A stretch of DNA of 64,000 bases. Source: Carpediemonas membranifera BICM. Its lineage: Eukaryota; Protista; Fornicata. Shown here piece by piece: positions 23,600-49,534 of the stretch; the stretch's first letter is position 1, and every line of letters starts with the position of its first letter. The notes under the pieces were generated by a model, which made no database searches, was not told where the DNA came from, and worked only from the letters and a program-made list of their open reading frames with translations. The position numbers and the translations under genes were made by a program. Where the stretch lies: assembly GCA_019828565.1 (NCBI GenBank), contig JAHDYR010000015.1, positions 359,505-423,504 of the forward strand, read 5' to 3'.

Positions 23600-23724
23600 A
23601 AGGTGTTGTGGGTCCTACCCAAAGTTACACAGATTTACGTTATATTTAATAGTCAAGGAGTTTCTCCTCGACACCCTTGTGTCGAGTCTTCTCCTCAGTA
23701 AAAGTTCAACACCCATTGAACCAC

Positions 23725-23736
23725 AGTACTAGTACT
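23725..23736. promoter_or_regulatory. Palindrome at PBS position, LTR-9
   Basis: AGTACTAGTACT. Confidence 0.8.
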
Positions 23737-23746
23737 ACCAAAACAT

Positions 23747-26700
23747 ATGGGTACGGAAACTTACAGAAGCCTGAAGAAGAATCCGCCTCTCCTGAAGAAG
23801 TCCTCCATGGACGCTCTTTTGGACTTTGCGGATAACCTCCACGATCATCGCGCCTTAGGCGGCCGCGATGATGTTATTGACCTCATCGAGCCTAGCATAG
23901 CAGAGCTAGCAGGCCTTAACGACGACGAAGAGGTTGAAGACACTCCTCTCCTGCTCTCCGCGAAGCTCCGTAAGAAACGTCGTGTCGCAGCCCAAGATGA
24001 ACGAGTCCTCAAGCGCCTCGGTGCTGCCCTTCGACCTTCTCGCCCGAGCATGCGTCTACAGCTCTTCCGAGTCCCCGCCAAGTCCTTCGAGCCTGATGAG
24101 GTTGCTCGAGTGAACCGCCGATTCAATCTGCTCTTGAAGCTCGTTCAACCCGAAGATCCCGAGGACGTCTTGAAGGAGACGTACAGCCGCTGCTTCAAGT
24201 TCCCCAACAACAGTCGCATCATGTATCGAGTCAGAGAATCAACGGAGCGCAAGGATCTCAAGGACGCAATGGCTGATGTCCTCGTCATGTCACGCGACCT
24301 CAAGGAGTCCAAGGAGATGATCGCTTCCTTCGGCGCTGCGGGGGTCTCCGACTCACAGCGTACCAACACCACGCCCTCCCATACACGGCACACGGGGAGC
24401 GGTCCGAAGAACCCTCATCGACGCGAGCCTGACCGCACGAACGTAGCCCCCTCAAAAGGCAAGCCGATCGACAAGCCCAAGCACGAGAAGAAGCCATTCG
24501 TGTGCTTCAACTGCGGTAAGGTCGGTCACTCCGCTCGCCGATGCCCTGCTCCGAAGACAACCTGTTCCAAGTGCCAGAAGCCGGGCCACCGAGCTGAATT
24601 CTGCCGTTCTGAGGTAAATTCAGCTCGTTGTGTGTTTTCTCTCGGTTCCCGTCAGAGTGTCCTTCCCACCGTCAAGGCTAGCATTCTTAAGCAAGTCGTG
24701 TCCGTCCTGTTCGACTCGGGCGCTGACTGCGCAACCATTGACCCCAAGCTCTGCTACGGCAAGGCAGTGAAGTGGATCTCACACGAGAAGACACTTATCG
24801 AGACAGTGGGCGGCGTCAGAGAGGCCGAGGGTCAGGTATCCTTCCGCCTCGTCTTAGCGCCCTCGCCATTCACTCCGCGCGGATGCTCTATCACTATTAA
24901 GGCCTACGTCCTGTCGACCGCTTTCGATGTATGCCTGGGTTACCCTCAGATGGTGGAGATCGGCCTTCTCCCTTCGTTGTCTGAGCCTACCAGCGAGCTC
25001 GCAGCCAGCGACGAACCACCTACATTCGAGAAGTACGTCGCGCAAGCCAGAGCCATGTCCTCTTCCTTTTCTCAGAGGCAGGCCGACATCCTCAAGCGTT
25101 ACGCCCGGACATTCGTGGACCGTACCGAGCCAAGCCGGCTCGAACCGTATGATTTGGTCCTCAAGGGCGACAGAGTCGTACACATTCGGCCGTACTATGT
25201 TCCCCCGCCGAAAGTCCCGATCATTCAAGAGCACATTAATACGCTCCTGGCAAAGCGCTACATCGAGGCATGCCAGTCTCAATACGCGAGCCCTACCATC
25301 ATAGTTCCAAAGAAGGGGGGAAAGACGCGTTTTGTCGTCGACTTCCGCGAGATCAATCAACTAACGGAACCATTCGACTACCCCATCCCTCGCATAGACG
25401 AAGTTCTCACTCAACTGTCCGGAAAGTCTGTGTTCGCTACCCTAGACTTGTCAGCAGGATACCATCAGATCCCTCTTACTGAACGGTGCCGTCACCTAAC
25501 CGCCTTCCGTACTGTTTTTGGTCAATACCAATATACACGGATGCCCTTCGGCTTACGTAACGCCGGAGCGTACTTCCAGAGGGCGATGGAAGACGGGTTC
25601 AAGGGTCTGGTGGGCTCCGCCTGTGTCATATACATTGATGACATCATCGTCATGGGTGCGGATGAGGACGAGTACCTGGGAAACCTCGAAAAAGTCATGC
25701 AACGCGTTGACAAGCTTAACCTTCAGCTCGGCCGAGATAAGTGCCAGTTCGGTCGGCAAGAGGTCGAGTTCCTCGGGTGGATCATATCCCAAGGCAGCGT
25801 GAAGATCTCACCCCAGCGGACCGAAGATATCGCGAACCTCAAGCTGTCTTCATCCACGAAGGGCATGCAGGGTCTCAACGGATTCCTCAACTATTTCCGC
25901 GATTACATACCCAACTTCGCGGTCCGAGCTAAGCCTCTGCTAGACGCCATGTCCGGTCGGCAGACCCCCTCGAGACGTTCTTCAGAAGTCGCTGGACGAT
26001 CTGAAACAAGCTTTATGTTCGGCCGACGCTCTAGCCATGTTCGACGCGACTAAGCCTCACACTGTCATGACTGACGCATCCGATGTCGGGTACGGAGCAG
26101 TCTTACTCCAAGAGGGCCGACCAGTTTGCTATATGTCGCGTGCGTTCAACGACGTCCAGTCACGCTGGTGTACCGGTGAGAAAGAAGCCTACGCTATCGT
26201 CGCAGCGTTACAACGATGGCGCAAGTTCCTGTGCTGGGAGAGCTTTACTATTCTCACGGATCACCGGAACCTACTCTATATGTACCGGTCCACCAACGCC
26301 AAGGTCCGCCGGTGGGCTGATTCGATCGCCGATTTAGATTTCACCCTACAGCACATCGCCGGTCTGGACAACGGTGGAGCCGACGGTCTCTCGAGAGTAT
26401 TCTCCATGCAACAGGCGTCGAGGGATCAGGTATCCCGCGCTCATCTCACAGCAGGAGCTCATCTGTCTCGCCGGATGACAACCGAGCAACTTAGGGCCGA
26501 CGGTTTGTCTGTCTCCCGTCAAGTCGTAGACGACGTGATTACCGCGTGTCCAGAGTGCCAAGTCTTGGCCCGCCCTCCTGTTGATACGCCCGACGGCCTG
26601 CATACAGCTGTAGACCTCCCGTTCCGGCGTGTGGCCATTGACACCATGGGTCCGCTACCGACGGTCAACGGCCTGTCCTACGTGACAGTAATGATCGACA

Positions 26701-27683
26701 TGTGCTCCCGCTGGACAGAGCTAGTCCCGGTCAACAGCACCTCAGCCAAAGACGCAGCCAACGCATTGGTCAACACCTGGATTCTACGATACGGATGCCC
26801 CGAAGTCGTCCAATCGGATGGGGGCTCAGAGTTCAAAAACGCTCTGTTCAAACGCCTCTCCGAAGAGATGGGGTTCGACGTCCACATAACGACAGCATAC
26901 CATCCCCAGAGCAACGGTGTCGTCGAACGCGCGAACAAGGAGGTCGAACGCATCCTCAGAGCCAGGAAGCTGGAGTTAAGGAATAACGATTGGGTAGCAC
27001 ACCTACCAGTCGCCCAATTCTTGGTCAACTCAATGCCCAGGATCCCGACCCGGTTGACTCCGGCCGAGATCATGTTTGGCGCCAATTTATCAATACCGTC
27101 ATCGATCTATATCACGGATGCCGCCTCGGCTGGTCCGCCACAGTCGAAGCTAGCCGCAGCCGATGCCGCCATCCAACTCGCCAAAGCAAGGATTAGAGCC
27201 ATGCGCGAAGACGCTCTCGCAAAGGCAACCTCATCGAGAAGCGAGATATTGAGCCGTTTCGTGCTGGTCAAATACTACCCAAGACCACCGAGCAAGCTAG
27301 CCCCGGGCTGGCGCGGCCCCATGAGGCGTGTCGCAGCCGTCAAACGTGATGGTGTTGTCGTCGCATATGAGGTCCAAGACCTCAGTCAGTCAGCGGACGG
27401 TCCAACTATCAAGGTAGACGCGGCACGTGTGCGAAGATTTGACCCAGGCAAGCTCTCGGAGCAACAGATCTATGACCTCGCAGCCGCTTCCGTCGATGAG
27501 TGGCATGTCGAGCGCATCTCACGCTCTAGAGGCTCGGGCCCCAAGTCAAGGCGCGAGTACCTCGTACACTGGGTCGGATTCGAGGATTCAGAGGCTTCAT
27601 TCGAACCTTATTCGCACGTCAAAGATTTGGAAGCCCTCGATACATATTTGAAGTCTGACCAAGCCAAGCGTGACGGTCTGTAA
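23747..27683 (+). CDS. gag-pol: LTR-9 gag-pol with chromodomain; one frameshift near 25965
   Basis: ORFs 23747-26053 and 26037-27683; CCHC, FDSGA, YIDD, TDAS, YLVHWVGFEDSEAS. Confidence 0.9.
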
Positions 27684-27725
27684 AACTTCTCAACATCGAA
27701 GCTGTATCCTCGAGGAACAAACGAT

Positions 27726-28830
27726 TTATTCAGAGCTAGATTCCTCGTCTTCCGTCTCCTCCGTGTCCGTCAGCTCGACCAACCAAGTCGGGTCAGCGTG
27801 GCGCTCAAGGGCGTTCTCAGCCAAGTACTCTCGCACACACCGGACAAGGCAGAGATCAGCGTTGAGGGACACGATGCTGAGTCCCGAGTATCCGTCATAC
27901 TGCAGGATCAACACAAAAGACCCGGGACCACAAGTCGTCTTCAGATACTCGTGACGGACTACGCACGTGACAGTGTAGTAGCGGTCCGGATCAGAGACCT
28001 GAAGCGGCTCCCAGTGAGCCTCATCGCCAATGGCGGGCAGGTAGCCGTCGTGGCACAAGCGGCTGACCAGGGTTGCCCAGAAGTCGTTGGGAGCCGGGAT
28101 GCGCCGGCTGATGCCGTAGACAGCGACACGGAAGTAGTCCGGTGCGAGGACGAGGACCAACAGGCGGTTAAGATATCCGCGCGCTGTAGTGTCCGACTTG
28201 ACCCCGCCGGCAGTCCGCACAGCCGCCACGAGAGCTGCAGAGTAGTGACCATTACCGGGTGAAGACCCACCCAGCGTGATGTCGCGGCCCCGGATCGCGG
28301 CCGACACGATGTCGCCATCGGTCAAGCGCTTCTTGCCGAGCTTGAGGTGGGCCCTCACACCGGCAAGCGCGACCTGGCAGTGAGCCACGAGAGCCAAGAC
28401 CTGCTGGGTCAGCTTCACGTCCTGCACTACGGCTGCGTCGTTCAGACGACCTTGCTCAATAGCGTCAAAGATTCGCTGGAGCGGCAGCTCGATGGAGTTG
28501 GTGTAACCTTCCAGGCGTCGGGCAACCTCGGCCTTGATGTCGTGGGGCATCAGAGTCGTCATCGTCAGGGTGCGAGTGATGCGTTCTGAGGCTTGCACGC
28601 GGTGACTATATAACCTCACGGTTGATGTTTGTTACTTACAGATTGTCGGTGACCATGCGCTTGCGTCCACGATACTTCTGAGCGCGAAGGGAACGACAAA
28701 CGGACGTATGGGCAACAATAAGTGGCCTAGCCAGATCGTCATCACCAAGTTCGGTGATTTTGGCACGAATTTCCTTCAGAACGGCCTCTACGGCTGTGTT
28801 GTCCGACATCAAATGAGTTGACGGCGACAT
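27726..28830 (-). CDS. LTR-9 antisense accessory gene, exons 28640-28830 and 27726-28605, ~356 aa, chromo-like C-terminus
   Basis: 34-nt intron 28606-28639 (GTAAGT..TATAG) restores the frame; homologous to the LTR-5/11 gene (LQVSDP.R.Y, QY.GY, VREYL). Confidence 0.78.
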
Positions 28831-29547
28831 ATCCTGCACATTTCTCGGAAACGGTCGAAGGAACAACTAACAAGGTCATCTTAGTCTTCAAGCATGCATT
28901 TATTGTCGGTAATAAGGCATTAGGAGCTTCCTAGTGCTCCTTCCGGTCAGTTTGATGTTGTTATTCAAGTACAGTTGGACGCAGAAAATTAGAAGCCTCA
29001 GAACTCCTCAACGGAGCCGAATTGGAGCTTCTAAGTACGTTTTTCGGCGTCTGTGTGATTATGAGCGATAAGGGCTCAGCATTGGCAGTGTTTGCTAGAG
29101 CAATCGTTCTTGGCCTTCGAATTACATGGAATGGCATATAACACGTATAAGGTTTGTGAAGACGGCCTAGGAAGGCCGTGGAGGGGCAGTGGTAAGCCTT
29201 TCCGTCACGTTTCACCATTTTTGAAACAGAGCTCACATAGCGGTACCGCAGTTAGATCATGATACCATCATTTTGATTTCGTTCAGCTAGATGCGAAAGC
29301 ACTCAGGCCATGGGGTTGCCAGCCCTATGAGTCACCGTTGGCGGTCGGGTGGCACCGTCCAGGCCTTTGGTGAAATGCTGACGTCAAGTCTCTCTGTCAT
29401 GCCTATACCAGGCATGGAGGGGCAGTGTTGTGGGTCCTACCCAAAGTTACACAGATTTACGTTATATTTAATAGTCAAGGAGTTTCTCCTCGACACCCTT
29501 GTGTCGAGTCTTCTCCTCAGTAAAAGTTCAACACCCATTGAACCACA

Positions 29548-30778
29548 AAGGCTCAACACCGATGACACCAGGCAGTTCAGAAGCGAACAGGTCCGGGTAG
29601 TCCTGGATCAGCGGATGAGCGATCTCGGCTGGTGCACGATCGTCAGGCAGGGGCACCGGGGTGGCCTCAACGAACTCTGCCTCGGCGCGCGGGGCGAGCA
29701 GGTCGGGCAACAAACCCACGGCGCGTATCGTGGGCACGCCGATGATTAGCTCTCCGGCGGAAGGGAGGACGAAGAACTCCGCCGTGACCTCCACTGGGCG
29801 CTCGAGCTGCAGTGTGATAGTCACGGGACGGGTCGTATACTCCGCGGTAATAGTGCCGTTGGCCGTCTCGAGCGGGACGTGGGCCTCGAAGAGACGCAGG
29901 TGCATCTCCTCGGCAAGCGCTGGAGGGATGAAGTTAAGGCTGGCACCGGTATCAAGCAAGGCGGTGCGAGGGACGTGGTCAGAGAAATGGAGGCTCACAT
30001 GAGGGCTGCTGTTGTTGGTGTGGGCGGCCAACTTAGCAGTGAGGTTGAGCGCTTGGCGACGGATGCCATGCGCGAAGAAGCCGGGGTGATCCCGGTGAGG
30101 GCACTCGGGCCGTACATGACCTGTGAGGCCACAACCGTGGCAGATGAGCTCCGACTTCGGCCGGCGATCGACGGTAGGGGTGGTCGGCTCAGCCTTGGCC
30201 TTGATGGGCGGAGGGCGCCGGGGCGGCATGTCGAGGCGGGGCTCGTCGCGGAAAGATTCGCTCTGCGCGCGGATGGAGACTATGTCATCGAGCTCTGTGA
30301 TGGCCGCCTCACAGGCCTCAGCGAAGGTCTCGGGGCTAACGATCTTGAGGCGAGTCTTGAGGGCCGAGGGGAGCGAGGCAGTGAAGAGCTTCCGCGTCTG
30401 TTGATCGATGGGGCGAGTGTTATCATCACATAGCGCGAGGGTCTTATGGTAAGTGTCTATGTGGGCTAAGAGGGCCGGCGGCTCGAGGGAGCGCAGGCGG
30501 AGGCGCTGGATAGACTGGTAAGTTTCAACTTGTGTATGAAACTTGAAGAACTCGGTCGCGATAGTGTCGAAGAGGTCGCCGTCGGGGATATCGTCGATAG
30601 GGACGCGGAGGCGCACGAGGCGCGTGACAGATGGGCTAAGGAAGGTTGCAAGGGGAGGTAGTTGGAGATTGAGGGCTCTCGCTTGAACTTGGTAGTGATC
30701 GACGTCGTCCTGGAAGGTGAAGAAGGCAGAACGCGTAAGCGATCGCAAATACGGGATGGTGATGCCAAAAGACTGCAT
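29548..30778 (-). CDS. gag: LTR-8 gag-protease (piece 1)
   Basis: CHGCGLTGHVRPEC, LLDTGAS; joins in frame (GVEP|FHID) to the pol piece. Confidence 0.9.
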
Positions 30779-30780
30779 GT

Positions 30781-30792
30781 AGTATCGATACT
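30781..30792. promoter_or_regulatory. Palindrome at PBS position, LTR-8
   Basis: AGTATCGATACT. Confidence 0.8.
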
Positions 30793-30914
30793 GTGCTTGG
30801 TTTGGCCTTGAAGGGAACTTTCCAATTAATGGATGAGAACTGATTTACTCCTGGAAACCGCAGTGGTGAAAATGGTCAAAAACCAAAACCTTAAACTGCG
30901 CCTCACCACAAGAC

Positions 30915-31716
30915 GACGGCTCACCACCCTCAGTCGAATGGTTTAGTTGAGCGAGCGAATGTTTCGGTGAAGTCCATCCTGACAGCGCGTCGTTACCAGT
31001 TTAGATCCAATGATTGGGTCCACAGCTTACCGATTGCTCAGTACCTTGTTAACTCGACCCCTCGAGTCCCTACTCGACTCTCCCCAGCCGAGATCCTGTA
31101 TGGTACCGAGATGCGGGTGCCGAAGGACATCACCTTCATCGCGCCGAGCGAGACATATATCGTCGACCAACAGGAGGACTGGCTGTCTGAGGCCAAGGCG
31201 TACCGGCTCATGGCTGCCGAGCGTATTAAGAGCAAGCGGTTACTACAACAGTATAGGCCGGACACCCGCGCTACTGTCTCGACTCCCTACGTCCTGGTGG
31301 CTTACCCCGACAGACCTCCCGACAAATTCGCCGCCGGGCTGCGTGGCCCAATGGCGTTAGTGTCTGTGCACCAGGAGTACAACAAAGTTGTTGCATACAC
31401 TGTGCGAGACCTTGAATCACTGAAGCAGTTCCGAGTCGACGCCTCCCGGGTCCTCCCATTCGATCACGGCGACATGTCCTTGGAGCAAGTTGCTCGCTTG
31501 GCTAACACAGTGGCGGCCGAGTACGTACCGAGCAAGATCGTGAAGTCCCGGCCCGAGTCTGGTCCGGTCGAGAGTCGCGAATACCTGGTCGAGTGGCAGG
31601 GCTATGAGCCAGACGAGGCGTCGTGGGAACCATTCGAGAATGTCGATGGCTGTGACAAGTTTGAAGACTTTCTTGAGCAGAGAGGCTTACACCGTGCTGC
31701 GCACTCCAGGCAGTAA
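30915..31716 (+). CDS. pol: LTR-5 pol piece 3 (integrase C-terminus, chromodomain)
   Basis: TAHHPQSNGLVER; YLVEWQGYEPDEASWEP. Confidence 0.9.
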
Positions 31717-31735
31717 ACGGATTCTCAGTCAAGAT

Positions 31736-32859
31736 TTATTGATAGTCGTCATCGGATTCGTCGTCAGGACCGTTGATCCATTCCTCAAGCCCGAAGTCCA
31801 CCAGGTACTCGCGGACCACGGTGACCGCAGCAAGGGTTGAGTCCAGACCAGTGCACGTGGGGGCGGTGTAGCCCTCGTACTGCACATGTAGGATGAGGCG
31901 ACGGTCAGGGCCAGCGGTCAGGATTTCATGACCTAACACGTCCAGGACGTCATACTCACGCTCAGGGTCAGAGACCTGCAGGGCCAGGCCGAGGCGTTGC
32001 GGCAGGGATGGGAGCTCGTCCATGAGGCGGAGGTTGGCTACCAGGGCGGCCCAATGGGCTTGGGTCACCGAGACGTGATCGGAGCGCTCGCCGTGGAGGA
32101 ACAGACGGTAGTACTCCGGCGCGAGAGCCAGGACGACCACGCGGTAGAGGGTCTGGCGAGCCATGCTGGAGCCACAGCCGAGTGCACGGCCGAGCGCTGA
32201 CAGGACCTGGGGGCTGACGTACTGGTTGGAGGTACCGTCACTCTTCAGGTGGAACACGCCGGCGGAAATGGCGGCGCGGACGATGTCCGAGTCGGTCTGA
32301 CCCCGGCTGCCCGAGCGCTCACGGAGGAAGCGCAAGGCGCGGTGCTCCCTCTGGAGCTGCACCAGCAGAGTGGCCGAGATGTCGAGGAGGGCGCCCGCAT
32401 CCCCGCTCCAGAGCGTGCCGGTGGATAGATGGTCGAAGATGGCCTCAAGGGGCACCTCAACGAAGTTGACATACCCCGCAAGGCAATCACGCACCACAGC
32501 GGACAGCAGAGGGTCGCGGTGGGTGAAGCAACCCTGCATGGCACCGCCCGCAGGCACCCGACAGAGATCTCTGGCGGAAGTTGCCGGCACTACGATCGAG
32601 CTGTGTAAGAGGACCGGAGGTGCACAAACCGTTTCAGGGGGTTCTTCGACGCATCTCCACAGCGCTTACGGATAGCCTTCTGTCGAAGAGCGCTCAGGGA
32701 TCGGGCCTTATGACGCTGACAACGAGCGATCGTCGCTAAGGCGTTATCGAGTACCTTACGGTAATCAGCATCGGCTAATTCGCCTGAAAGCTCGCGAATC
32801 TTATCGAGGGCGCGCGTATCCTCCATGTTTGGCCGCTTTTTCTCAGGAAAAAGCGACAT
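31736..32859 (-). CDS. LTR-5 antisense accessory gene, exons 32630-32859 and 31736-32600, ~364 aa, C-terminal chromo-like domain
   Basis: 29-nt intron 32601-32629 (GTTTGT..TACACAG) joins the two ORFs in frame; start ATG inferred. Confidence 0.75.
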
Positions 32860-35800
32860 ATCCTGCACTTTTCCCGAAAGACGATGGGAAGTGCCCATAA
32901 TGATCCCCATGATAGACCATTCTCAATATTTATACCTCAAACACAGTCCAAGGGACTTCTGTCGTCCGTGGAGCAGTGTTACTGATGTTGATTAGGTTTC
33001 GATGCAGCGCAGAACAAAAAAGAGCCAGAACTTGCCAACGAAGCCGAATTGGGGCCTCAAAACCCCTTTTTCGGGCGCTGTGTAAGAATGGGGCGGATCA
33101 GCCTAACGTACCGGAACTTTCAGTATGAGCGATGGCGAAATGCCTAAAAATGCTCGGGGCGAGAATTCCCGAGCCGAGCGCGAGCCCCAGAGTGCCCGCG
33201 AGGGGGCGGGGCTGTGGTACGTCCTTTTTATACTTATACAGGAGCTCCTGAACCCATATCTTAATTAGCAGCGCTGCATAGATCTTTTCTGAATCTTTTA
33301 GGTATCGTCGACGAATTTTACTTTCATACCTATCCGAAGCGTAATACCTCACTGGGAGGTTGCAATGAGACGTAATTCCAGAAGTTGGTTGTCGTTGTCC
33401 CGCCGATAATTCCAATAGTGGTTCGGCATGAGCGAGCGTAATCCCAAGATCGATTGGTGGCTCTAGCCCCACGTAATGCCAGATGTTGGTCGTGGTGATG
33501 GCCGCGCGACTGCTTGGCCATGGGGGGGAAGTGTAGTCAATATTAATATCTACCAATATCCCCGGGAGGGTCCAAACCTCTTTTTACTTGTAAAACCTAT
33601 CTCTTCCAAGACTACACCTACTCCAAGTCAGGACATAAAGTCACAACGGTGGCAGCACAATAGGAACTCGAATGCAGAACAGCACCGACCCACTACCCCC
33701 ACGGACCGCACTGAGAACAGGAGAACCGTACCAGATAAGCTTGAGAAAAGGTTGAAATATGTCACCAAGCTGTCATGAAGAAGACAACAACGGTAAGAGC
33801 ACAGAGGAAATCATCAGCTTACATGAGAGGTCGCTCATACGACACTGTCAAAGCCTTAAGAAGACACACCCCCTGCAGGATAAAACGGCTGCCAACCATC
33901 ACGGTCTCAGCAGAACCGGATTGAATGTGTTCACTCGCTCGGATAGCGCACTTTGTAACACCCGCCCGACCAACTGTGAGAGGCTCAGCCCCCTTATTGT
34001 CCATGATATACAACGCGGCAGACCGACTTGGGTCACCATCTGATCACGGCATCAGGAAGACACGTTGCCTTAACAGCCAAGAAGAATTGTACCCACGACC
34101 TGGCGGGTAACTGGTCATCATCGGGTATGCGCACAAGCAAGGTTGCATCAAGATCAGGCGAAGATATGGTGAGGCGAAAATGACTCCATCACCCACCTGT
34201 ATCGGCCCCGCGAGCCTTGTCTCGGCTCATACACGTCCCTGGAACATCCTGGCGTCCCTCCGCCTCGCTCTTGAGTCGAAGTCGTCGATGGTCAAAACCG
34301 ACGTTGACCTTGCGCGCGCTCCCTATAGACGCCGGCGTACAGTCCTGTGCCAACTGGCAGCGCTCGGACCCGCCGTCTGTGCGTCGCTTGGAGCGTTCTA
34401 GAGCTGGATCGGCGAAAATGAGGAAAAGACGCTTGTTGAGGACAACAACGCTGTGGACGATCGCAATGGGGCAAGATTAGGTGAATAAAGAATAAGTAGT
34501 ATGCGCTGACGGCGCCTAGTTGATGTCATTCGCTGTTGAAGAGGCGAACTTGCGAAAATCGACATGAAAACCACAAAGTGGTCAGGAGGGAGGGGTTATA
34601 AGCAAAGAAGGGGCAATGTAGCGATGTAAATGAAATGAAGAGGCAATATCGAGCATTCTGAGCATCGCTCCATCATCTTCGCTGTTCTTCCGACATTTCG
34701 ATGGTGAAATGCCACAGGACGACTCAACTGGGTCATCCAGGAAACACGGGGCAAATCGACCCTATCGGGCCCCCGGGTGTGGTGCCGCACCGCTGACCTG
34801 AGCGGCGCTTTCTATCGCCGGGTTCTATCCACCGTAATAGAGAAACGTGGGTCCGAGCATCCTATCGCTCATGAGGCCCACCAGGCGGGACCAAGCAGCT
34901 TCTAATCACACGTATACAGACATAAGACCTTCTAGGCAACTTGTCCACGTTCAAGACTGCGTTCTCATCACCGCCAACCGCACGGAGATTGCGGAAATCA
35001 TTCAGCTTCTAGGTTTCGCACGGCGCCTGCTTGTATCCATCATTTATGTCGTCGCGTGGACAACGAGGACGCTCCTGACACTGGAGAATCTTGCTCGCCT
35101 CGTTCACATGATGGGAAACGCCACCCAGTTCGTTGTACGCATGTGTGGAACCAAAAAGGCTGGGAGAAGTGATTTTAATTCGACACTTGGGTGTCGTCAC
35201 GACTAAGCTTGACTAAAACACAATTATATAAATAGGGCGCGTATAGCGCCACACTGCCCCCATGATGACCCTGGATCATCATTGAGAATTGTGTCAGAGT
35301 GCGTCGGATCTTCGGATCTGGTCCGATCTGATGGGGCCTAGGTTCGAACCCCAGTGTGAGCGGTTTTTGCTCGGATGGCATAAAGTGCGCGACTGTGGCT
35401 GAGTCGCGGCGACGAACGAACGTAAGAAGGCGGCCGATGAGGAGAAATTTGCGAAACGTGCTGGTTGAGAGCGCGATGGGTTGCGGCTCCACACGTCGAG
35501 TGGGAGTCCGCATCGCGACCTCAGTGTGGTGGAATGGCAACGGCATGAAATTCGGCCACAAACTTGATGTGCGTAGAAACGGCTAGATCGCTTGGAGAAC
35601 GTTGTGCATGTGCACATGAACGGTATGCGACGTCCTTGGCTCCGACTGAGCCATGCCTTGGCGAGAAAGGCATCGAAACGGTGGAAGGAACTAGCAAGTG
35701 GGGCGTTAGCGGTAAACGTGCAGCGTTGCAGTGTTTTGAGCAACTCAGTGGTTACGAGAGTCGCAGGACACGTTATCCGTGCTCTTCAGGATCACTCTTG

Positions 35801-36726
35801 GCGGTGGTGTGGAATTATGACTTCGAGTGCGACTTGGTGCGGCGTCGATGTTGGCGTTGACCCCGGAGCCGTCTGCGGTGCCTGCTCACCACCTCCACTG
35901 CCTCTGGGTGTTCCTCGAGATACTTATCGAGGGCGGCGAGCTGGTCGAGATCGAGGTTGTATCGCTCGACGGTGTGGTTTGGAAGAGAAAGAGTTTACGA
36001 GTAAAAAGAGGTTTGGACCCTCCCAGGGATATTGGTAGATATTAATACTGACTACACTTCCCCCCCATGGCCAAGCAGTCGCGCGGCCATCACCACAACC
36101 AACATCTGGTATTACGTGGGGCTAGAGCCACCAATCGAACTTGGGATTACGCTCGCTCATGCCGAACCACTATTGGAATTATCGACGGGATAACGACAAC
36201 CAACTTCTGGGATTACGTCTTATTGCAACCTCCAGGTGAGGTATTATGCGTAGTAAGGTGTGACCGAAAGATTCGAGGATGATATCAAAAAGATTCGGAA
36301 AAGATCTATGCAGCGCTGCTAATTAAGATATGGGTTCAGGAGCTCCTGTATAAGTATAAAAAGGACGTACCACAGCCCCGCCCCCTCGCGGGCACTCTGG
36401 GGCTCGCGCTCGACTCGGGAATTCTGGCCCCGAGCATTTTTAGGCATTTCGCCATCGCTCATACAGAAAGTTCTGGTACGTTGGGCTGATCCGCCCCATT
36501 CTTACACAGTGCCCGAAAAAGGGGTTTTCGAGCCCCAATTCGGCTTCGTTGGCGAGTTCTGACTCTTTTTGTTCTGCGCTGTACCGAAAGTTAACCAACA
36601 TCATAAGCACTGCTCCACGGACGGTAGAAGTCTCGTGGACTGTGTTTGAGATATAAATATTGTGAATAGTCCGTCATGGGGATCACTATGGGCACTTCCA
36701 TTCGTCATTTGGGAAAAGTGCAGGAT

Positions 36727-37847
36727 ATGTCGCTTTTTCCTGAGGAAAAGCGGCCAAACATGGCGGATACGCGTGCGCTCGACCAAATTCGTGAGCTTTC
36801 GATGGAGTTAACTGATGACGATTATCGCAAGGTGCTCGAAAATGCCCTTGCGACGATTGCTCGGACGCAACGCTATAAGGCCCGCACGATGAGCGCCCTG
36901 CAGAAGAGGGCCATCCGCAAGAGCGGCGGGAATGCCTCCCAGATGCCCATGATGCGGTTTGTGCGCCTCTATTCTTCTTACCTAGGATCTTCACCGTGCC
37001 GGCAACTTCCGCTCGGGAGCTCTGCCGTGTGCCGGTGGGGGGTGTGATGGAGGGGTGCTTCACGAAGCAGGCAGACCAGCTCGCCGATGTGGTTCGACGG
37101 TGCTTGGCTGGCTACGTTAACTTCGTTGAGGTGCCCCTCGAGGGGATCTTCGATCACCTCTCCACCGGCACGCTGTGGAGCAAGGACGCAGGCGGCTTGC
37201 TCGATCTGTCAGCCGGCCTGCTGGTCCAGCTCCAGCGAGAGCATCGTGCGCTCCGCTTCCTGCGGGAGGCGTCTCGCAGCCGTGCCGAAACCGACTCCGG
37301 CATAGTCCGCGACGCCGTTGACGCCGGCGTTTTCGATCTCAAGGGCAACGGCTCAAACAGGTACGTCACCCCGGAGACCCTGTTCTCGCTCTCCCGCGCT
37401 CTCGGCTGCGGCCAGAGCCTGGCCCGCCGCACCCTGTACCGGGTCGCCGTCTTGGCCCTCGCCCCAGACTACTACCGCTTGTTCCTCCACGGGGAGCGTA
37501 GCGAGAACGTCTCAGTCACCGCCACTCACTGGGCCGCCCTGGTCGCTAACCTCCGCGCCATGGACGAGCTTCCGTCCCTGCCGGAGCGGCTCGGTCTGGC
37601 CATGCAGGTCTCTGACCCTGAGCGCGAGTACGAGGTCCTTGACGTGCTGGGTCACGAGATCCTGACGGCTGGATCCGACCGCCGACTCATTCTTCACGTT
37701 CAGTACGCGGGCTACACTGCCCCTACCTGCACTGGTCTGGACGAGACCCTCGCTGCCGTCAGCGTGGCTCGCGAGTATCTGATCGACTTTGAGCTCGAGG
37801 ACTGGATCAAGGGCCCTGACGACGAGTCCGATGACGACTACCAATAA
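36727..37847 (+). CDS. LTR-11 antisense accessory gene, exons 36727-36956 and 36986-37847, ~363 aa
   Basis: 29-nt intron 36957-36985 (GTTTGT..TACCTAG) gives MMR|IFTVPATS in frame; AATAAA overlaps the stop. Confidence 0.78.
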
Positions 37848-37866
37848 ATCTTGATTGAGAATCCGT

Positions 37867-40800
37867 TTACTGCCTGGAGTGCGCAGCACGGTGTAGTTCT
37901 CTCTGCTCAAGAAAGTCCTCAAACTTGTCACAGCCATCGACATTCTCGAATGGCTCCCACGAAGCTTCGTCCGGCTCATAGCCCAGCCACTCAACCAAGT
38001 ATTCGCGATTCTCGACCGGACCGGAGTCGGGCCGGGACTTCACAATCTTGCTCGGTACGTACTCGGCCGCCACTGTGTTAGCCAAGCGAGCAACTTGCTC
38101 CAAGGACATGTCGCCGTGATCGAATGGGAGGACCCGGGAGGCGTCGACTCGGAACTGCTTCAGTGATTCAAGGTCTCGCACAGTGTATGCAACAACTTTG
38201 TTGTACTCCTGGTGCACAGACACTAACGCCATTGGGCCACGCAGCCCGGCGGCGAATTTGTCGGGAGGTCTGTCGGGGTAAGCCACCAGGACGTAGGGAG
38301 TCGAGACAGTAGCGCGGGTGTCCGGCCTATACTGTTGTAGTAACCGCTTGCTCTTAATGCGCTCGGCAGCCATGAGCCGGTACGCCTTGGCCTCGGACAG
38401 CCAGTCCTCTTGCTGGTCAACGATATACGTCTCACCCGGCGCGATAACGGTAATGTCCTTTGGCACTCGCATCTCGGTGCCATACAGGATCTCGGCTGGG
38501 GAGAGTCGAGTAGGGACTCGAGGGGTCGAGTTAACAAGGTATTGGGCAATCGGTAAGCTGTGGACCCAATCATTGGATCTAAACTGGTAACGACGTGCTG
38601 TCAGGATGGACTTAACCGACACATTCGCTCGCTCTACTAACCCATTCGACTGGGGATGATGAGCCGTCGTCTTTCTCGTTGTAAACCCGAGTCGGGCACT
38701 CAGGTCGTTAAAGACTGCGTTGACGAACTGGGATCCTCCATCCGTCTGCAGTACCTTCGGTACGCCGTATCGGAGGACCCAGTTATTGACAAACGCCCTG
38801 GACGTCTCGACCGCTCGGGTAGTCTGGAGCGGGACAAGCTCAGTCCAACGTGAGCACATGTCTATGACGACGAGGATATACTTATAGGTCGTGCCGTCGA
38901 CCGTGCACGAGGTAGCGGACATAGTGTCCATGGCCACTCGGTCGAAGGGGTGCTCGACCGCGGTGTGCAAACCCGCATCGGAAGAGGCCGGGGGCTTACG
39001 CCTTAACTGGCATATTGGGCACTTGGCGATATAGTCGTCCACGTCCTTCTGGCGGACACGTACGCCCCAGTCTCGAAGAAGGTTCTTGGTCGCCCAGGCG
39101 GACAAGTGAGCCCCGGCGAAGTGATGCGCCTTCTGCAGCCTGTCCGCGACTTGGGTATCGAGGGTGTTAGCGAACACGCGAGAAAGGCCATCTGCTGCCC
39201 CGTTGTCAACACCCGGAACGTGACGTATGGTGAAATCGAGGTCAGCTAGTTGGTCGTACCATCTACGGACCTTGGGGTTGATGGACTTGGCCATGAACAG
39301 CAGGTTGCGGTGATCAGTACGGATGGTAAAGTGCGTCCACGAGAGGAATTTCCGCCAACGCTGGACGGCCAGGATGATTGCGTAGGCTTCCTGCTCTGTG
39401 GTACTCCACCTAGTCTGGACCGCGGAGAATGCGTGGGACATGAAAGCGATCGGCTGCCCGTCCTGTAGTAATACGGCGCCGCATCCCACGTCTGAGGCAT
39501 CGGTCATGAGGACATGTGTCGCGTCCGTCTTGAAGTGAACGAGGGAGACCCGCTTAAGGAGCTCGGCGATAACGTCGCCCAGGGCCGCTTGCTGACCCGG
39601 CCCACCGGGTTCGGCCTTGCCAGCCGACACCTGCAACAGAGGATGAGCTCGGGACGCGAAGTTGGGCACGAAGTCACGGAAATAATTGAGGAAACCGACG
39701 AGTGCCTGTGCGGACCGCTTGCTGGTCGGTAGTTTCAGCTTCTTAATGTCGTCGATGCGGTCTTCGGCAATCCTCACGGTGTCTCCGGACACGAGTCGAC
39801 CCAGGAACTCGACCTCAGCCGCGGCGAAGACGCACTTATCGCGACCTAGGTGTAGGTCATACTCTTGGCAACGTTTCAGGACGTCCCATAGGTTCCTTAT
39901 GTAGGAAGGCTCGTCCCGACCCATGACAATAATGTCATCGATGTAAATAAGGCACTTCCCTGCCGAGATCAGGTCGGAGAAAGCCTGCTCCATGGCCCAC
40001 TGGAAATGAGAACCAGCGTTACGCAGACCAAAGGGCATAGTCGTGTACTCAAACCGTCCAAGGGGGAGTCCCGAAGGCGGTCAGAGGACGAGAACGGTCC
40101 GTCAGTGCCACCTGATGGTAGCCGGCCTTGCAGTCGAGCGTAGCAAAGATGGTATTACCCCTAAGCCTAGCAAGGCAATCCTCTATGATCGGGATAGGGT
40201 AGTTGAACGGGGGAGTCTTCGCGTTGACCAAACGGAAGTCGATAACGAACCGGGTACGGTCCTTCCCCTTTGGGACCAAGAATGCCGGTGAGGAGTAAGC
40301 CGATGCTGATGGCTGGATGAAGCCATGTCGGGACAGGTCGTCAAGGTGTTCCTGGAGAAGTGTCTTCTTCTCCGGCGGCATGAAGAACTCGCGGCTAAAG
40401 ACGGGTTCATCATCAGACAAGACTAGATCGTAAGGGATGAGCTTACTCGGACGCCCTACTCTGTCCTCGAACAGGCCGACAAACCGCGCGAGCAGTCTGT
40501 CCTGAAGGGAAGACGACTTGTCAGACAAGGTGAATAGGCTCAACTTCTGGGGAGTAATGACCGTTGAGACGTCTTCAGCCTGCTCGGCGTCATTGGCGTC
40601 AGACTCCTCGCAGTCGTCAATCTGAGGAAGGATCCCCAGGGTGACCATATCAGGGTACCCAATGATTAGATCGTACTCTGAGGGTAGGAGGTACGCACGA
40701 GTAGTAAAGGTGCACCCACGGGGGACCAGAGCTGATTTGGCAAAGGTTACTTCGGTGGAAATAGTCTGGTCGACTGTGATGACTCCAGCCGGTGTCGTCA

Positions 40801-41909
40801 CCTCGACCGGGTCACAATGCAGGATCTTTTCGCCGGACCTCTCGGCCACTTGCGGCGATATGAAGGTTGCTGACGCGCCACAGTCGAACAACATCGACTC
40901 TGCGCTGGTCCTGTATATGGATCCTGACACAATCGGAAGAGCCTGCGCTCTGCGTTTGCTAGACGCCGCGAAACAAGACAAATAAGAATAGTTCTGGACC
41001 TTTATACGGTCACAGAACTCTCTCTTGTGGCCCTCGCGCCCGCACTTCTCACACTTGGACTTGGGCTTCCGGCACTCGGGGCTGAAATGGCCCTTGCCCC
41101 CCGCAGTTGTAACAGGTTGGGGTCGTGCTGGTAGGGCGAGCCCGATCGCGGGACCGCTTGTCCGGGCGGTGATGGTCATGCGGGCGGTCACGACGGTCGT
41201 AGGGGCGGTCTCGGCGGTCATCTCGGCGGTCACGACGGTCGCGCTGGTTACGGCTCTGGCCGCGTTGCGGATGGGCGCCTGGCACGGGCGCTGTCGGACG
41301 GCGCGACTGATCGGAGCGGATCGCCTCGGTGAACGGAGCAAGGTACTCAGCCGACTCGGCTACGTCGCGTGCCGTCTTCATGGTGTATTGCTGGGTCTCC
41401 GCCAGTGAGCAACCCTCAGTCTGCTCCTTCAGTCTGTAGTAGAGGGATTGGCCCTTCACAGCAAAGGCCCGCAAGTAGGCTTCACGAATGGTGTCATCCT
41501 CGTCCATGTTAAGGCACTCCAACAAGGTGTTGAACTGCGAGTTGAGCTTCGACACCTCGAGCGGCGTGAACGCCGCGATGCGCAGCCTGATAAGGTTCAG
41601 GCATTGTTCCTTTCTGGTGGGGCGCAAGGCAGCGGCGAGTCGCTGCATGATGATCTTCTCTCTGAGCTTGCGTGATGAAGTGGAAGGTTCGTCGTCATGT
41701 TGGTCACCCTGAGGAAGCGGAACCTCCTCTAGGGTCTCTAAGCCTAGCACTTGTGATGCATAGGACTGGATCTCCGGGCTTATAAGCTTGCGGAGCTTCG
41801 CCTTACCTCCTCTAGCCTTAAAGTCACGCAGTGACGTCGTAAAAGCTACGAAAGCGCTGAATGTTGCCTCTTTCAGGAGCGGCGCTTGTTTTTTCTGTTC
41901 TCTACCCAT
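37867..41909 (-). CDS. gag-pol: LTR-11 gag-pol with two homopolymer frameshifts (~41100, ~40063)
   Basis: ORFs 41049-41909, 40049-41341 and 37867-40038 are colinear with the LTR-5 polyprotein. Confidence 0.9.
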
Positions 41910-41914
41910 AGGTA

Positions 41915-41926
41915 AGTACTAGTACT
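41915..41926. promoter_or_regulatory. Palindrome at PBS position, LTR-11
   Basis: AGTACTAGTACT. Confidence 0.8.
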
Positions 41927-42009
41927 GTGGTTTGGAAGAGAAAGAGTTTACGAGTAAAAAGAGGTTTGGACCCTCCCAGGGATATTGGTAGATATTAATA
42001 CTGACTACA

Positions 42010-45850: not shown

Positions 45851-45862
45851 CAGTAATTACTG
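45851..45862. promoter_or_regulatory. Palindrome at PBS position, LTR-10
   Basis: CAGTAATTACTG. Confidence 0.8.
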
Positions 45863-46159
45863 TGGAACCAAAAAGGCTGGGAGAAGTGATTTTAATTCGA
45901 CACTTGGGTGTCGTCACGACTAAGCTTGACTAAAACACAATTATATAAATAGGGCGCGTATAGCGCCACAGCATGCAAAGTGCGAATTCTACACGGCACA
46001 TCGGGAGAGGCACTGAATAAAAGCATTGTATACACACCAAGATCCTCTAGCGACGAAATATCACGCTTGATCTTATTGCACGGCGGAATACTGCTCTCTC
46101 TCCTGATCATTAAGAACCTAACGTTCCTGCCCCCTAATCAACTGTCCGATAGCTACAAG

Positions 46160-46922: not shown

Positions 46923-47717
46923 CACCACCCTCAGTCGAATGGTTTAGTTGAGCGAGCGAATGTTTCGGTGAAGTCCATCCTGACAGCGCGTCGTTACCAG
47001 TTTAGATCCAATGATTGGGTCCACAGCTTACCGATTGCTCAGTACCTTGTTAACTCGACCCCTCGAGTCCCTACTCGACTCTCCCCAGCCGAGATCCTGT
47101 ATGGTACCGAGATGCGGGTGCCGAAGGACATCACCTTCATCGCGCCGAGCGAGACATATATCGTCGACCAACAGGAGGACTGGCTGTCTGAGGCCAAGGC
47201 GTACCGGCTCATGGCTGCCGAGCGTATTAAGAGCAAGCGGTTACTACAACAGTATAGGCCGGACACCCGCGCTACTGTCTCGACTCCCTACGTCCTGGTG
47301 GCTTACCCCGACAGACCTCCCGACAAATTCGCCGCCGGGCTGCGTGGCCCAATGGCGTTAGTGTCTGTGCACCAGGAGTACAACAAAGTTGTTGCATACA
47401 CTGTGCGAGACCTTGAATCACTGAAGCAGTTCCGAGTCGACGCCTCCCGGGTCCTCCCATTCGATCACGGCGACATGTCCTTGGAGCAAGTTGCTCGCTT
47501 GGCTAACACAGTGGCGGCCGAGTACGTACCGAGCAAGATTGTGAAGTCCCGGCCCGAGTCTGGTCCGGTCGAGAGTCGCGAATACCTGGTCGAGTGGCAG
47601 GGCTATGAGCCAGACGAGGCGTCGTGGGAACCATTCGAGAATGTCGATGGCTGTGACAAGTTTGAAGACTTTCTTGAGCAGAGAGGCTTACACCGTGCTG
47701 CGCACTCCAGGCAGTAA
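46923..47717 (+). pseudogene. Duplicated LTR-5 integrase C-terminus/chromodomain fragment
   Basis: Protein identical to 30967-31716. Confidence 0.88.
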
Positions 47718-47736
47718 ACGGATTCTCAGTCAAGAT

Positions 47737-48860
47737 TTATTGATAGTCGTCATCGGATTCGTCGTCAGGACCGTTGATCCAGTCCTCAAGCCCGAAGTCC
47801 ACCAGGTACTCGCGGACCACGGTGACCGCAGCAAGGGTTGAGTCCAGACCAGTGCACGTGGGGGCGGTGTAGCCCTCGTACTGCACATGTAGGATGAGGC
47901 GACGGTCAGGGCCAGCGGTCAGGATTTCATGACCTAACACGTCCAGGACGTCATACTCACGCTCAGGGTCAGAGACCTGCAGGGCCAGGCCGAGGCGTTG
48001 CGGCAGGGATGGGAGCTCGTCCATGAGGCGGAGGTTGGCTACCAGGGCGGCCCAATGGGCTTGGGTCACCGAGACGTGATCGGAGCGCTCGCCGTGGAGG
48101 AACAGACGGTAGTACTCCGGCGCGAGAGCCAGGACGACCACGCGGTAGAGGGTCTGGCGAGCCATGCTGGAGCCACAGCCGAGTGCACGGCCGAGCGCTG
48201 ACAGGACCTGGGGGCTGACGTACTGGTTGGAGGTACCGTCACTCTTCAGGTGGAACACGCCGGCGGAAATGGCGGCGCGGACGATGTCCGAGTCGGTCTG
48301 ACCCCGGCTGCCCGAGCGCTCACGGAGGAAGCGCAAGGCGCGGTGCTCCCTCTGGAGCTGCACCAGCAGAGTGGCCGAGATGTCGAGGAGGGCGCCCGCA
48401 TCCCCGCTCCAGAGCGTGCCGGTGGATAGATGGTCGAAGATGGCCTCAAGGGGCACCTCAACGAAGTTGACATACCCCGCAAGGCAATCACGCACCACAG
48501 CGGACAGCAGAGGGTCGCGGTGGGTGAAGCAACCCTGCATGGCACCGCCCGCAGGCACCCGACAGAGATCTCTGGCGGAAGTTGCCGGCACTACGATCGA
48601 GCTGTGTAAGAGGACCGGAGGTGCACAAACCGTTTCAGGGGGTTCTTCGACGCATCTCCACAGCGCTTACGGATAGCCTTCTGTCGAAGAGCGCTCAGGG
48701 ATCGGGCCTTATGACGCTGACAACGAGCGATCGTCGCTAAGGCGTTATCGAGTACCTTACGGTAATCAGCATCGGCTAATTCGCCTGAAAGCTCGCGAAT
48801 CTTATCGAGGGCGCGCGTATCCTCCATGTTTGGCCGCTTTTTCTCAGGAAAAAGCGACAT
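47737..48860 (-). CDS. Duplicated LTR-5 antisense accessory gene (intron 48602-48630)
   Basis: Near-identical to 31736-32859. Confidence 0.75.
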
Positions 48861-49534
48861 ATCCTGCACTTTTCCCGAAAGACGATGGGAAGTGCCCATA
48901 ATGATCCCCATGATAGACCATTCTCAATATTTATACCTCAAACACAGTCCAAGGGACTTCTGTCGTCCGTGGAGCAGTGTTACTGATGTTGATTAGGTTT
49001 CGATGCAGCGCAGAACAAAAAAAGAGCCAGAACTTGCCAACGAAGCCGAATTGGGGCCTCAAAACCCCTTTTTCGGGCGCTGTGTAAGAATGGGGCGGAT
49101 CAGCCTAACGTACCGGAACTTTCAGTATGAGCGATGGCGAAATGCCTAAAAAATGCTCGGGGCGAGAATTCCCGAGTCGAGCGCGAGCCCCAGAGTGCCC
49201 GCGAGGGGGCGGGGCTGTGGTACGTCCTTTTTATACTTATACAGGAGCTCCTGAACCCATATCTTAATTAGCAGCGCTGCATAGATCTTTTCTGAATCTT
49301 TTAGGTATCGTCGACGAATTTTACTTTCATACCTATCCGAAGCGTAATACCTCACTGGGAGGTTGCAATGAGACGTAATTCCAGAAGTTGGTTGTCGTTG
49401 TCCCGCCGATAATTCCAATAGTGGTTCGGCATGAGCGAGCGTAATCCCAAGATCGATTGGTGGCTCTAGCCCCACGTAATGCCAGATGTTGGTCGTGGTG
49501 ATGGCCGCGCGACTGCTTGGCCATGGGGGGGAAG

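Follow-up and report, generated by a model that had tools for sequence, protein, structure and literature searches.

Positions 27726 to 37847 of a 64,000-nucleotide (nt) stretch of the Carpediemonas membranifera genome, hereafter the window, lie in a pile of Ty3/Gypsy elements with very short long terminal repeats (LTRs). C. membranifera is a free-living metamonad, and its assembly comprises 24,237,836 bases in 69 contigs, with a GC content of 57%. The polyproteins of the elements contain the Pfam domains zf-CCHC, RVT_1, RT_RNaseH, and rve and a C-terminal Chromo domain. Here we describe a gene that lies between the pol stop and the 3' LTR of these elements, on the strand opposite to pol. We compared the copies in LTR-9 (c1; family D), LTR-5 (c2; family A), and LTR-11 (c3; family B). 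A fourth copy, c4, is a duplicate of c2.

Each of the four copies has two open reading frames (ORFs) in different frames, and a phase-2 GT..AG segment fuses the two. The parts of the gene, in window coordinates, are as follows.

28640-28830, minus strand: c1 exon 1, coding part (ATG at 28830, 63 codons plus 2 nt), with a basic end resembling a nuclear localization signal
28606-28639, minus strand: c1 intron, 34 nt, phase 2, GTAAGT..GTTATATAG (ends TATAG), absent from a spliced contig of run X1
27726-28605, minus strand: c1 exon 2, 292 full codons plus TAA (27726-27728); product of 356 amino acids (aa)
27729-27995, minus strand: c1 predicted C-terminal chromodomain-like domain (about residues 203 to 270 of the exon-2 product) and acidic tail, by fold comparison and family hidden Markov model (HMM)
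32630-32859, minus strand: c2 exon 1, coding part of the ORF (ATG at 32859)
32601-32629, minus strand: c2 intron, 29 nt, phase 2, GTTTGT..CTTACACAG (ends CACAG), with the signals of the host Rps12 intron
31736-32600, minus strand: c2 exon 2 (stop 31736-31738); product of 364 aa
36727-36956, plus strand: c3 exon 1, coding part of the ORF (ATG at 36727)
36957-36985, plus strand: c3 intron, 29 nt, phase 2, GTTTGT..CTTACCTAG (ends CCTAG), present in GenBank models of the same family
36986-37847, plus strand: c3 exon 2 (stop 37845-37847); product of 363 aa
48631-48860, minus strand: c4 exon 1 (c4 differs from c2 by 1 mismatch in 1,124 nt)
48602-48630, minus strand: c4 intron
47737-48601, minus strand: c4 exon 2

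An earlier, sequence-only reading of this DNA had proposed the introns of c1, c2, and c3. Their coordinates, lengths, phase, and in-frame fusion all hold, and the three products fall within the length of ~356 to 364 aa that it gave. It had also placed an AATAAA over each stop and the pol stop ~20 to 40 bp away. We found that AATAAA overlaps the TAA stop in every copy (c1, 27725-27730; c2, 31735-31740; c3, 37843-37848), and that a gap of 42 nt in c1, and of 19 nt in c2 and c3, separates the antisense stop from the pol stop (at 37867 in c3). In all families, the gene ends in [G/C]AA-TAA-A (final sense codon, stop, and first base beyond it), with T as the usual base after that. The frames of exon 1 and exon 2 differ in c1, c2, and c3, and with the intron retained, c1 exon 1 meets a stop within a few codons.

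Splicing, host introns, and selection

The splicing data came from three public runs of one 2017 sample, which were used as Logan contigs and compared with window positions 27600-33500. A contig of run X1 (395 nt, no mismatch) maps to 28381-28605 and 28640-28809, omitting exactly the 34 nt at 28606-28639. The omitted segment reads CT..AC on the plus strand and GT..AG on the gene strand, and the shorter arm of the contig is 170 nt. A genome-wide DNA search with 206 nt around the c1 junction recovered about 30 copies, none of which lacked the 34 nt. Almost all of these copies are full-length and 100% identical over the 206 nt. Because the joined form is absent from the assembly DNA, the X1 contig is best read as spliced RNA.

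The GenBank annotation of C. membranifera was trained with RNA-seq intron hints (PMC8516963). Two of its models from c3's family B (KAG9391677.1 and KAG9394700.1) use exactly the predicted junction (..SQMPMM / R / IFTVPATS..), as does the family C model KAG9395287.1. Intron removal at the exact borders is thus documented for family D (c1) by the X1 contig, and for families B (c3) and C through GenBank models only. The sequence-only reading had not recognized this spliced family, although spliced models of two of its families were already in GenBank as 'hypothetical proteins'. Dozens of such hypothetical proteins and unannotated ORFs of C. membranifera belong to one transposon gene family. A further GenBank model of 563 aa, KAG9391359.1 (named 'Aspartyl protease'), resembles the antisense family in its first ~170 residues and is apparently chimeric.

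An intron that is antisense to the genomic RNA of its element is no splice substrate. All DNA copies of the present intron keep it because the sense genomic RNA reads CT..AC at this place and is unspliceable. The c1 intron is present in all of the ~30 genomic copies and is missing from the spliced contig; therefore, retrotransposition copies it, and splicing takes it out of the antisense RNA alone. The sequence-only reading had argued for such survival from orientation, and the retention of the 34 nt in all of the ~30 c1 copies, together with the X1 contig, bears it out. Engineered retrotransposition reporters work in the same way, in that their antisense intron escapes removal from the element RNA and is carried to new copies. 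Those reporters are artificial cassettes, whereas the Carpediemonas gene is natural and selected, and so is a natural counterpart of the reporter trick.

The element intron is the host's ordinary intron in size and signals, as judged from a handful of host genes. In Rps12 genes, the Pfam match is split by a 31-nt GTTTGT..ATCACACAG intron, and a second intron of 32 to 33 nt follows the sixth codon. Introns are also present in a Snu13-like gene (30 to 31 nt), in another L7Ae-family gene (29 nt), in two CCT subunits (29 and 34 nt), and in Rpl36a (34 nt, GTATGT..CTCATATAG). All host introns examined (loci L042, L047, L054-L058, and L060-L063) are 29 to 34 nt long, begin with GT(T/A)(T/A)GT, and have YTNAY 2 to 4 nt before the AG. 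A branch-point-like YTNAY a few bases before the AG is typical of metamonads. The element introns (29 to 34 nt) begin with GTTTGT or GTAAGT and end with YTNAY-N2-4-AG or NTNATATAG, so that their GT..AG borders, length, and both signals are those of a U2-type spliceosomal intron of the host. The sequence-only reading had spoken of a micro-intron and proposed a comparison with host intron length and consensus. The intron itself stands, and it matches those of Rps12, CCT, L7Ae-family genes, and Rpl36a; its special smallness does not stand, because host genes have introns of the same 29 to 34 nt. The tubulins and most CCT domains are uninterrupted. Published tables give the intron number of C. membranifera as not determined (ND; PMC11787283).

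The 3' signal also has host counterparts. Many host genes have TAA-A or (A/G)TAAAT at the stop or within about 25 nt of it, and the [G/C]AA-TAA-A(T) motif at the antisense stop looks like this putative poly(A) signal. Among the host genes, one CCT gene (G000 C30:157086-158571) falls into two frames with only 4 nt between them; the cause is a frameshift or an assembly error, not an intron.

We estimated the ratio of nonsynonymous to synonymous substitution (dN/dS) by the Nei-Gojobori method, at dS values of 0.14 to 1.6, with the following results.

c2 versus c3: exon 1, 0.21; exon 2, 0.17
Two F subfamilies: exon 1, 0.05; exon 2, 0.14
c1 versus family F: exon 1, 0.41-0.44; exon 2, 0.12-0.15

The first of these is the LTR-5 to LTR-11 comparison that the sequence-only reading had suggested as a check. 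Read in the other five frames, these alignments gave ratios above 1.3, except in the codon-antiparallel frame (0.3), which is full of stops. Because dN/dS is well below 1 in the coding frame, both exons are constrained in the frames that the intron joins.

These ratios bear on the explanation that the two ORFs are frames left open by chance in GC-rich DNA, or are translated separately, and that the GT..AG is coincidental. DNA of 57% GC has many spurious ORFs on both strands, and many GT..AG pairs could formally join frames. However, exon 2 ratios of 0.12 to 0.17 are seen in the coding frame alone, exon 1 is constrained too, and five or more families retain the frame shift and the intron. In the window, a loose host-type intron motif is found just ~0.22 times per kb per strand. 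The joined frames exceed chance because this motif is rare, because five or more divergent families share the junction, and because the spliced X1 contig and the GenBank models have the same junctions. We therefore consider coincidence extremely improbable.

Besides the spliced contig, other contigs cover 27838-28200 and 28860-29525 of the c1 region. Depth was zero over the pol 3' end (27600-27796) and over 29570-33500. We infer an independent antisense transcript because the covered region ends short of pol and its depth differs from that of the upstream contig. The contigs extend 50 to 100 nt into the c1 3' LTR; strand and start cannot be read from them. The antisense transcript would come from its own promoter, either in the 3' LTR or in the ~600 to 670 nt that separate it from the ATG, and would end through the host-type 3' signal. 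The sequence-only reading had called this a separately transcribed cargo gene. The spliced antisense gene is upheld by the X1 contig and by dN/dS, and the word cargo is not, since the HMM and word-based searches found no host or foreign homologue outside the elements; integral accessory gene of the lineage is the better term.

Several short sequences recur ahead of the antisense ATG. A second intron-like segment of 34 nt, GTACGT..CTTACACAG, lies ~250 nt upstream in families A and B (33078-33111, minus strand; 36476-36509, plus strand; 49080-49113, minus strand), and the c2 and c3 segments differ at a single base. It could be a 5' untranslated region intron, if transcription begins near the 3' LTR. 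In families C, D, and F, a TAACAACATCAA-type motif lies ~125 nt upstream (window ~28945-28965, minus strand; same offset at L013 and L022). This motif is similar to the 5' half of the intron in its own element; the likeness is marginal in each family, yet the offset recurs. An (A/G)TAAAT motif is present 40 to 85 nt upstream in all families (window ~28893-28905, ~32925-32935, and ~36650-36662), and the ATG of families A, B, D, and F is set within a near-identical AAGTGCAG[G/A]ATATGTCGC string. The upstream (A/G)TAAAT and the string around the ATG may be promoter or initiator elements.

Distribution among elements and known counterparts

A search of the genome with the c2 exon-2 product found 113 places, in groups at about 99, 80, 38, 36, 33, and 25 to 27% identity. 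In the representatives that we fetched, the antisense stop lies tail to tail with a pol that ends in a chromodomain, 26 to 52 nt from its stop. Overall, the spacing is 19 to 52 nt in at least seven divergent families, and 172 nt in one degenerate copy. The pol C-terminal regions of the sampled families are 41 to 68% identical to that of c1. Phase-2 introns of 29 nt (families A and B), 33 nt (C), and 34 nt (D, F, and F') sit in the linker between a short N-terminal helical and basic segment and the core. The most distant families, G and H, are intronless and have a single uninterrupted ORF of 438 to 444 aa, in which the linker is longer.

A search of 1.8 billion representatives with the family profile gave strong matches only in C. 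membranifera, and one further match in a second assembly, GCA_002919055.1 (58% GC), which is probably C. frisia, although this identity is not confirmed. A word-based homologue search with c1 exon 2 returned three C. membranifera fragments only. The copy in the second assembly has the same tail-to-tail layout and a 1,328-aa gag-pol-chromo ORF. Its exon 1 is followed by a 29-nt GTATGT..CACTAACCCAG intron, in phase 0. The antisense gene of this copy (L064:2078-2151) changes frame again near 2100, which may be a frameshift, a misassembly, or another intron.

The pol tree places the intronless H families at its base and unites the intron-bearing families with the second-assembly copy in one clade (85/100), but its outgroup branch is very long. 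The intron was either gained or lost within the element clade. The intron is present in some families, absent from others, and present in a second species. This pattern may thereby offer a dated case of gain or loss in a mobile element of an intron-poor eukaryote. The family, being multicopy and recently active, also lends itself to the study of intron gain and loss and of the metamonad spliceosome acting on introns of about 30 nt.

The same distribution weighs on capture of a host gene by one element, which would make the antisense gene cargo in the strict sense, with a function for the cell. LTR elements are known to capture genes (PMC11963269), and a host-type intron, a host-type 3' signal, and a reading frame of its own would all suit such an origin. 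However, strong matches are confined to these Carpediemonas elements in both the HMM search and the word-based search, and the gene occupies the same place, 19 to 52 nt from the pol stop, in the divergent sampled families and in the second assembly. A capture, if any, predates the whole clade, and we regard this origin as quite improbable.

Two known systems offer the closest parallels. Plant Ty3/Gypsy elements of the Tat/Retand lineage (Grande gene23, RIRE2, and Retand) likewise carry a coding ORF in antisense between pol and the 3' LTR, likewise in most copies of the lineage, and a nuclear or DNA-binding regulatory role is suspected for it (PMC11963269). The Grande antisense ORF is reported to use its own promoter (PMC11963269). 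The Carpediemonas gene agrees with this class of antisense ORFs in its position across copies and families. However, the plant elements are non-chromoviruses with 3 to 6.5 kb between pol and the LTR, and their ORFs mostly encode a TRP28 (PF04195) domain (PMC11963269). The Carpediemonas elements bear a chromodomain and are compact (about 6 kb, with LTRs of 84 to 123 nt), and their gene has a spliced intron, no TRP28, and a chromodomain-like end; it thus lacks both the domain and the lineage of the plant class. No intron is described for the plant ORFs in PMC11963269.

Deltaretroviruses likewise have spliced antisense coding genes (HBZ of HTLV-1, APH of HTLV-2, -3, and -4, and SBZ of STLV), whose intron persists in the provirus because it is unspliceable in the genomic strand, and whose product is nuclear and regulatory (PMC10186651). 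These are, however, exogenous vertebrate retroviruses, and HBZ starts in the 3' LTR, has a short LTR-encoded first exon, and is a bZIP protein (PMC10186651). In contrast, the Carpediemonas intron lies inside the coding region, about 64 to 77 codons in, and no bZIP was found on the exon-2 products. The present gene extends intron-bearing antisense accessory genes from deltaretroviruses to the LTR retrotransposons of a deep-branching protist. Our coverage of the literature is incomplete and is no proof of absence, but within it no antisense coding gene with an intron has been described for an LTR retrotransposon. Within the same incomplete coverage, we also found no report of an LTR-retrotransposon antisense gene ending in a chromodomain-like fold.

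The predicted product and its possible roles

The exon products were searched and folded separately. Pfam assigned the exon-2 products to no family, with no hit to TRP28 or bZIP. In the AlphaFold (AF2) model of the exon-2 product of c1 (pLDDT, 76.6), residues 23 to 186 form a helical domain, and residues 202 to 263 form a C-terminal domain of three strands and a helix. We compared the C-terminal domain with 48,161 chains by VIA-align. The top 22 rows were almost all chromo or chromoshadow domains, with Z scores of 4.8 to 6.9 and root mean square deviations of 1.6 to 2.7 Å over 49 to 58 residues. Foldseek gave probabilities of 0.87 to 0.98 to chromo-type folds, and PF00385 is present in the closest clusters of the Atlas. 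The matches of the family HMM include a protein that has three Chromo domains by Pfam (E value of 8.8e-5) and chromoviral integrase tails (about 1e-4); those to true chromodomain proteins range from 9e-5 to 6e-4. In the alignment, aromatic residues are conserved at the three positions expected for a methyl-lysine-binding aromatic cage (Y..V and (Y/F)xG(Y/F)). The predicted three strands and C-terminal helix are common to the chromo and chromoshadow domains of integrases and HP1 (PF00385 and PF01393). The Carpediemonas C terminus differs from PF00385 in falling below the Pfam threshold and in having no W of the (T)WEP motif. We therefore call this C terminus, as predicted, chromodomain-like rather than a proven member of the chromodomain family.

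Taken together, the gene is very probably an integral accessory gene of a chromodomain Ty3/Gypsy clade of Carpediemonas, with two selected exons, a spliced host-type intron, and a chromodomain-like end. Several points weigh against this interpretation. The library type of run X1 is unrecorded, and we took it to be RNA because its coverage is patchy and the assembly has no DNA copy without the intron. Assembled contigs carry neither strand nor transcript start or end, so that the promoter and the independence of the transcript rest on inference. The c2 (family A) intron had zero depth in the runs, which hold no RNA evidence for or against it. A truncated GenBank model of the c1 family, J8273_4070, shares the acceptor but takes a donor 66 nt further upstream, giving a 100-nt intron; this donor is either an alternative one or an annotation artifact. 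On the protein side, Pfam Chromo (PF00385) did not match the C terminus in ten family members even at an E value of 10, and an hhalign comparison of the antisense C terminus with the elements' own pol chromodomains was not significant (probability, 0.3%). The product is known from nucleic acid sequence and models, not at the protein level. Finally, the helical domain, when folded alone (pLDDT, 79.7), resembles the DNA-binding domains of KorB, ParB, SopB, and VirB at Z scores of 4.1 to 5.3, which are below the chance level for helical models, so that a KorB/ParB-type assignment is a lead at most. An Atlas feature search with this domain gave no usable match.

In all families, exon 1 ends in a basic stretch, which by its composition looks like a nuclear localization signal. 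The ~360-aa product would enter the nucleus through this stretch and would act on chromatin or DNA via the helical domain and the divergent C-terminal chromodomain. We tentatively suggest, as a possibility short of a probable one, that it reads the same histone marks as the integrase chromodomain, and so shields the element's own copies from silencing or helps targeting. This proposed chromatin reader, encoded by the element, is directly testable.

The gene could also be real and spliced and its product a negative regulator, that is, a factor for copy number or latency, which would dampen sense transcription or integration, as do HBZ, APH-2, and Ty1 p22. The spliced antisense, nuclear-type proteins of deltaretroviruses repress transcription from the 5' LTR (PMC10186651), a chromodomain-like reader could attract silencing just as it could counter it, and run X1 covers the antisense gene with zero depth at the adjacent pol 3' end. 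However, the identity of the ~30 c1-family copies over 206 nt points to a very recent burst despite an intact gene, and we consider this explanation rather unlikely. For the accessory gene as such, a role as copy-number repressor and a role in anti-silencing or targeting are about equally possible.

A bolder version of the reader proposal, which we hold to be somewhat less likely still, is that the element has its own histone-mark reader. Here, a second, highly divergent chromodomain would face that of the integrase tail to tail, possibly be born from it, and compete with or mimic host heterochromatin proteins. If true, such a reader would let a retrotransposon govern its own chromatin state or integration sites. 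As for an origin of the antisense C terminus by inverted duplication of the integrase chromodomain, sequence support is absent, given the nonsignificant hhalign result.

Carrier elements and mosaic copies

The carrier elements combine a zinc knuckle, reverse transcriptase, RNase H, integrase, and a chromodomain with flanking LTRs, and are by this domain content chromovirus-type Ty3/Gypsy elements. Their main features in the window are as follows.

23603-29547, plus strand: c1 element (family D), a complete chromodomain Ty3/Gypsy element, by direct repeat and Pfam
23603-23725 and 29425-29547, plus strand: c1 LTRs, 123 nt, by direct repeat
23747-26053 and 26037-27683, plus strand: c1 gag-pol ORFs, by Pfam domains
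30967-31716, plus strand: truncated pol, tail to tail with the c2 antisense gene
35973-42009, minus strand: c3 element (family B), by LTRs and Pfam
35973-36056 (3' LTR) and 41926-42009 (5' LTR), minus strand: c3 LTRs, 84 nt

The c3 element is nested in another element with 110-nt LTRs (35144-35253 and 45861-45970), just past the pol stop of the latter. LTRs of 123, 84, and 110 nt thus flank seemingly complete elements of ~6 kb. A duplicated segment (30922-33445 versus 46923-49448), at a spacing of 16,001 to 16,003 nt, bears the second c2 gene, c4.

Some elements are mosaic. In an A-family copy and B copies, the pol C termini are nearly identical (tree distance of about 0.015), whereas the antisense proteins of the same A and B elements are just 79% identical, with a dS of about 0.9. 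At locus L032, compared with L024, a G-type antisense gene is joined to a C/F-type pol. These mosaic pairings of pol and antisense gene suggest recombination between element lineages.

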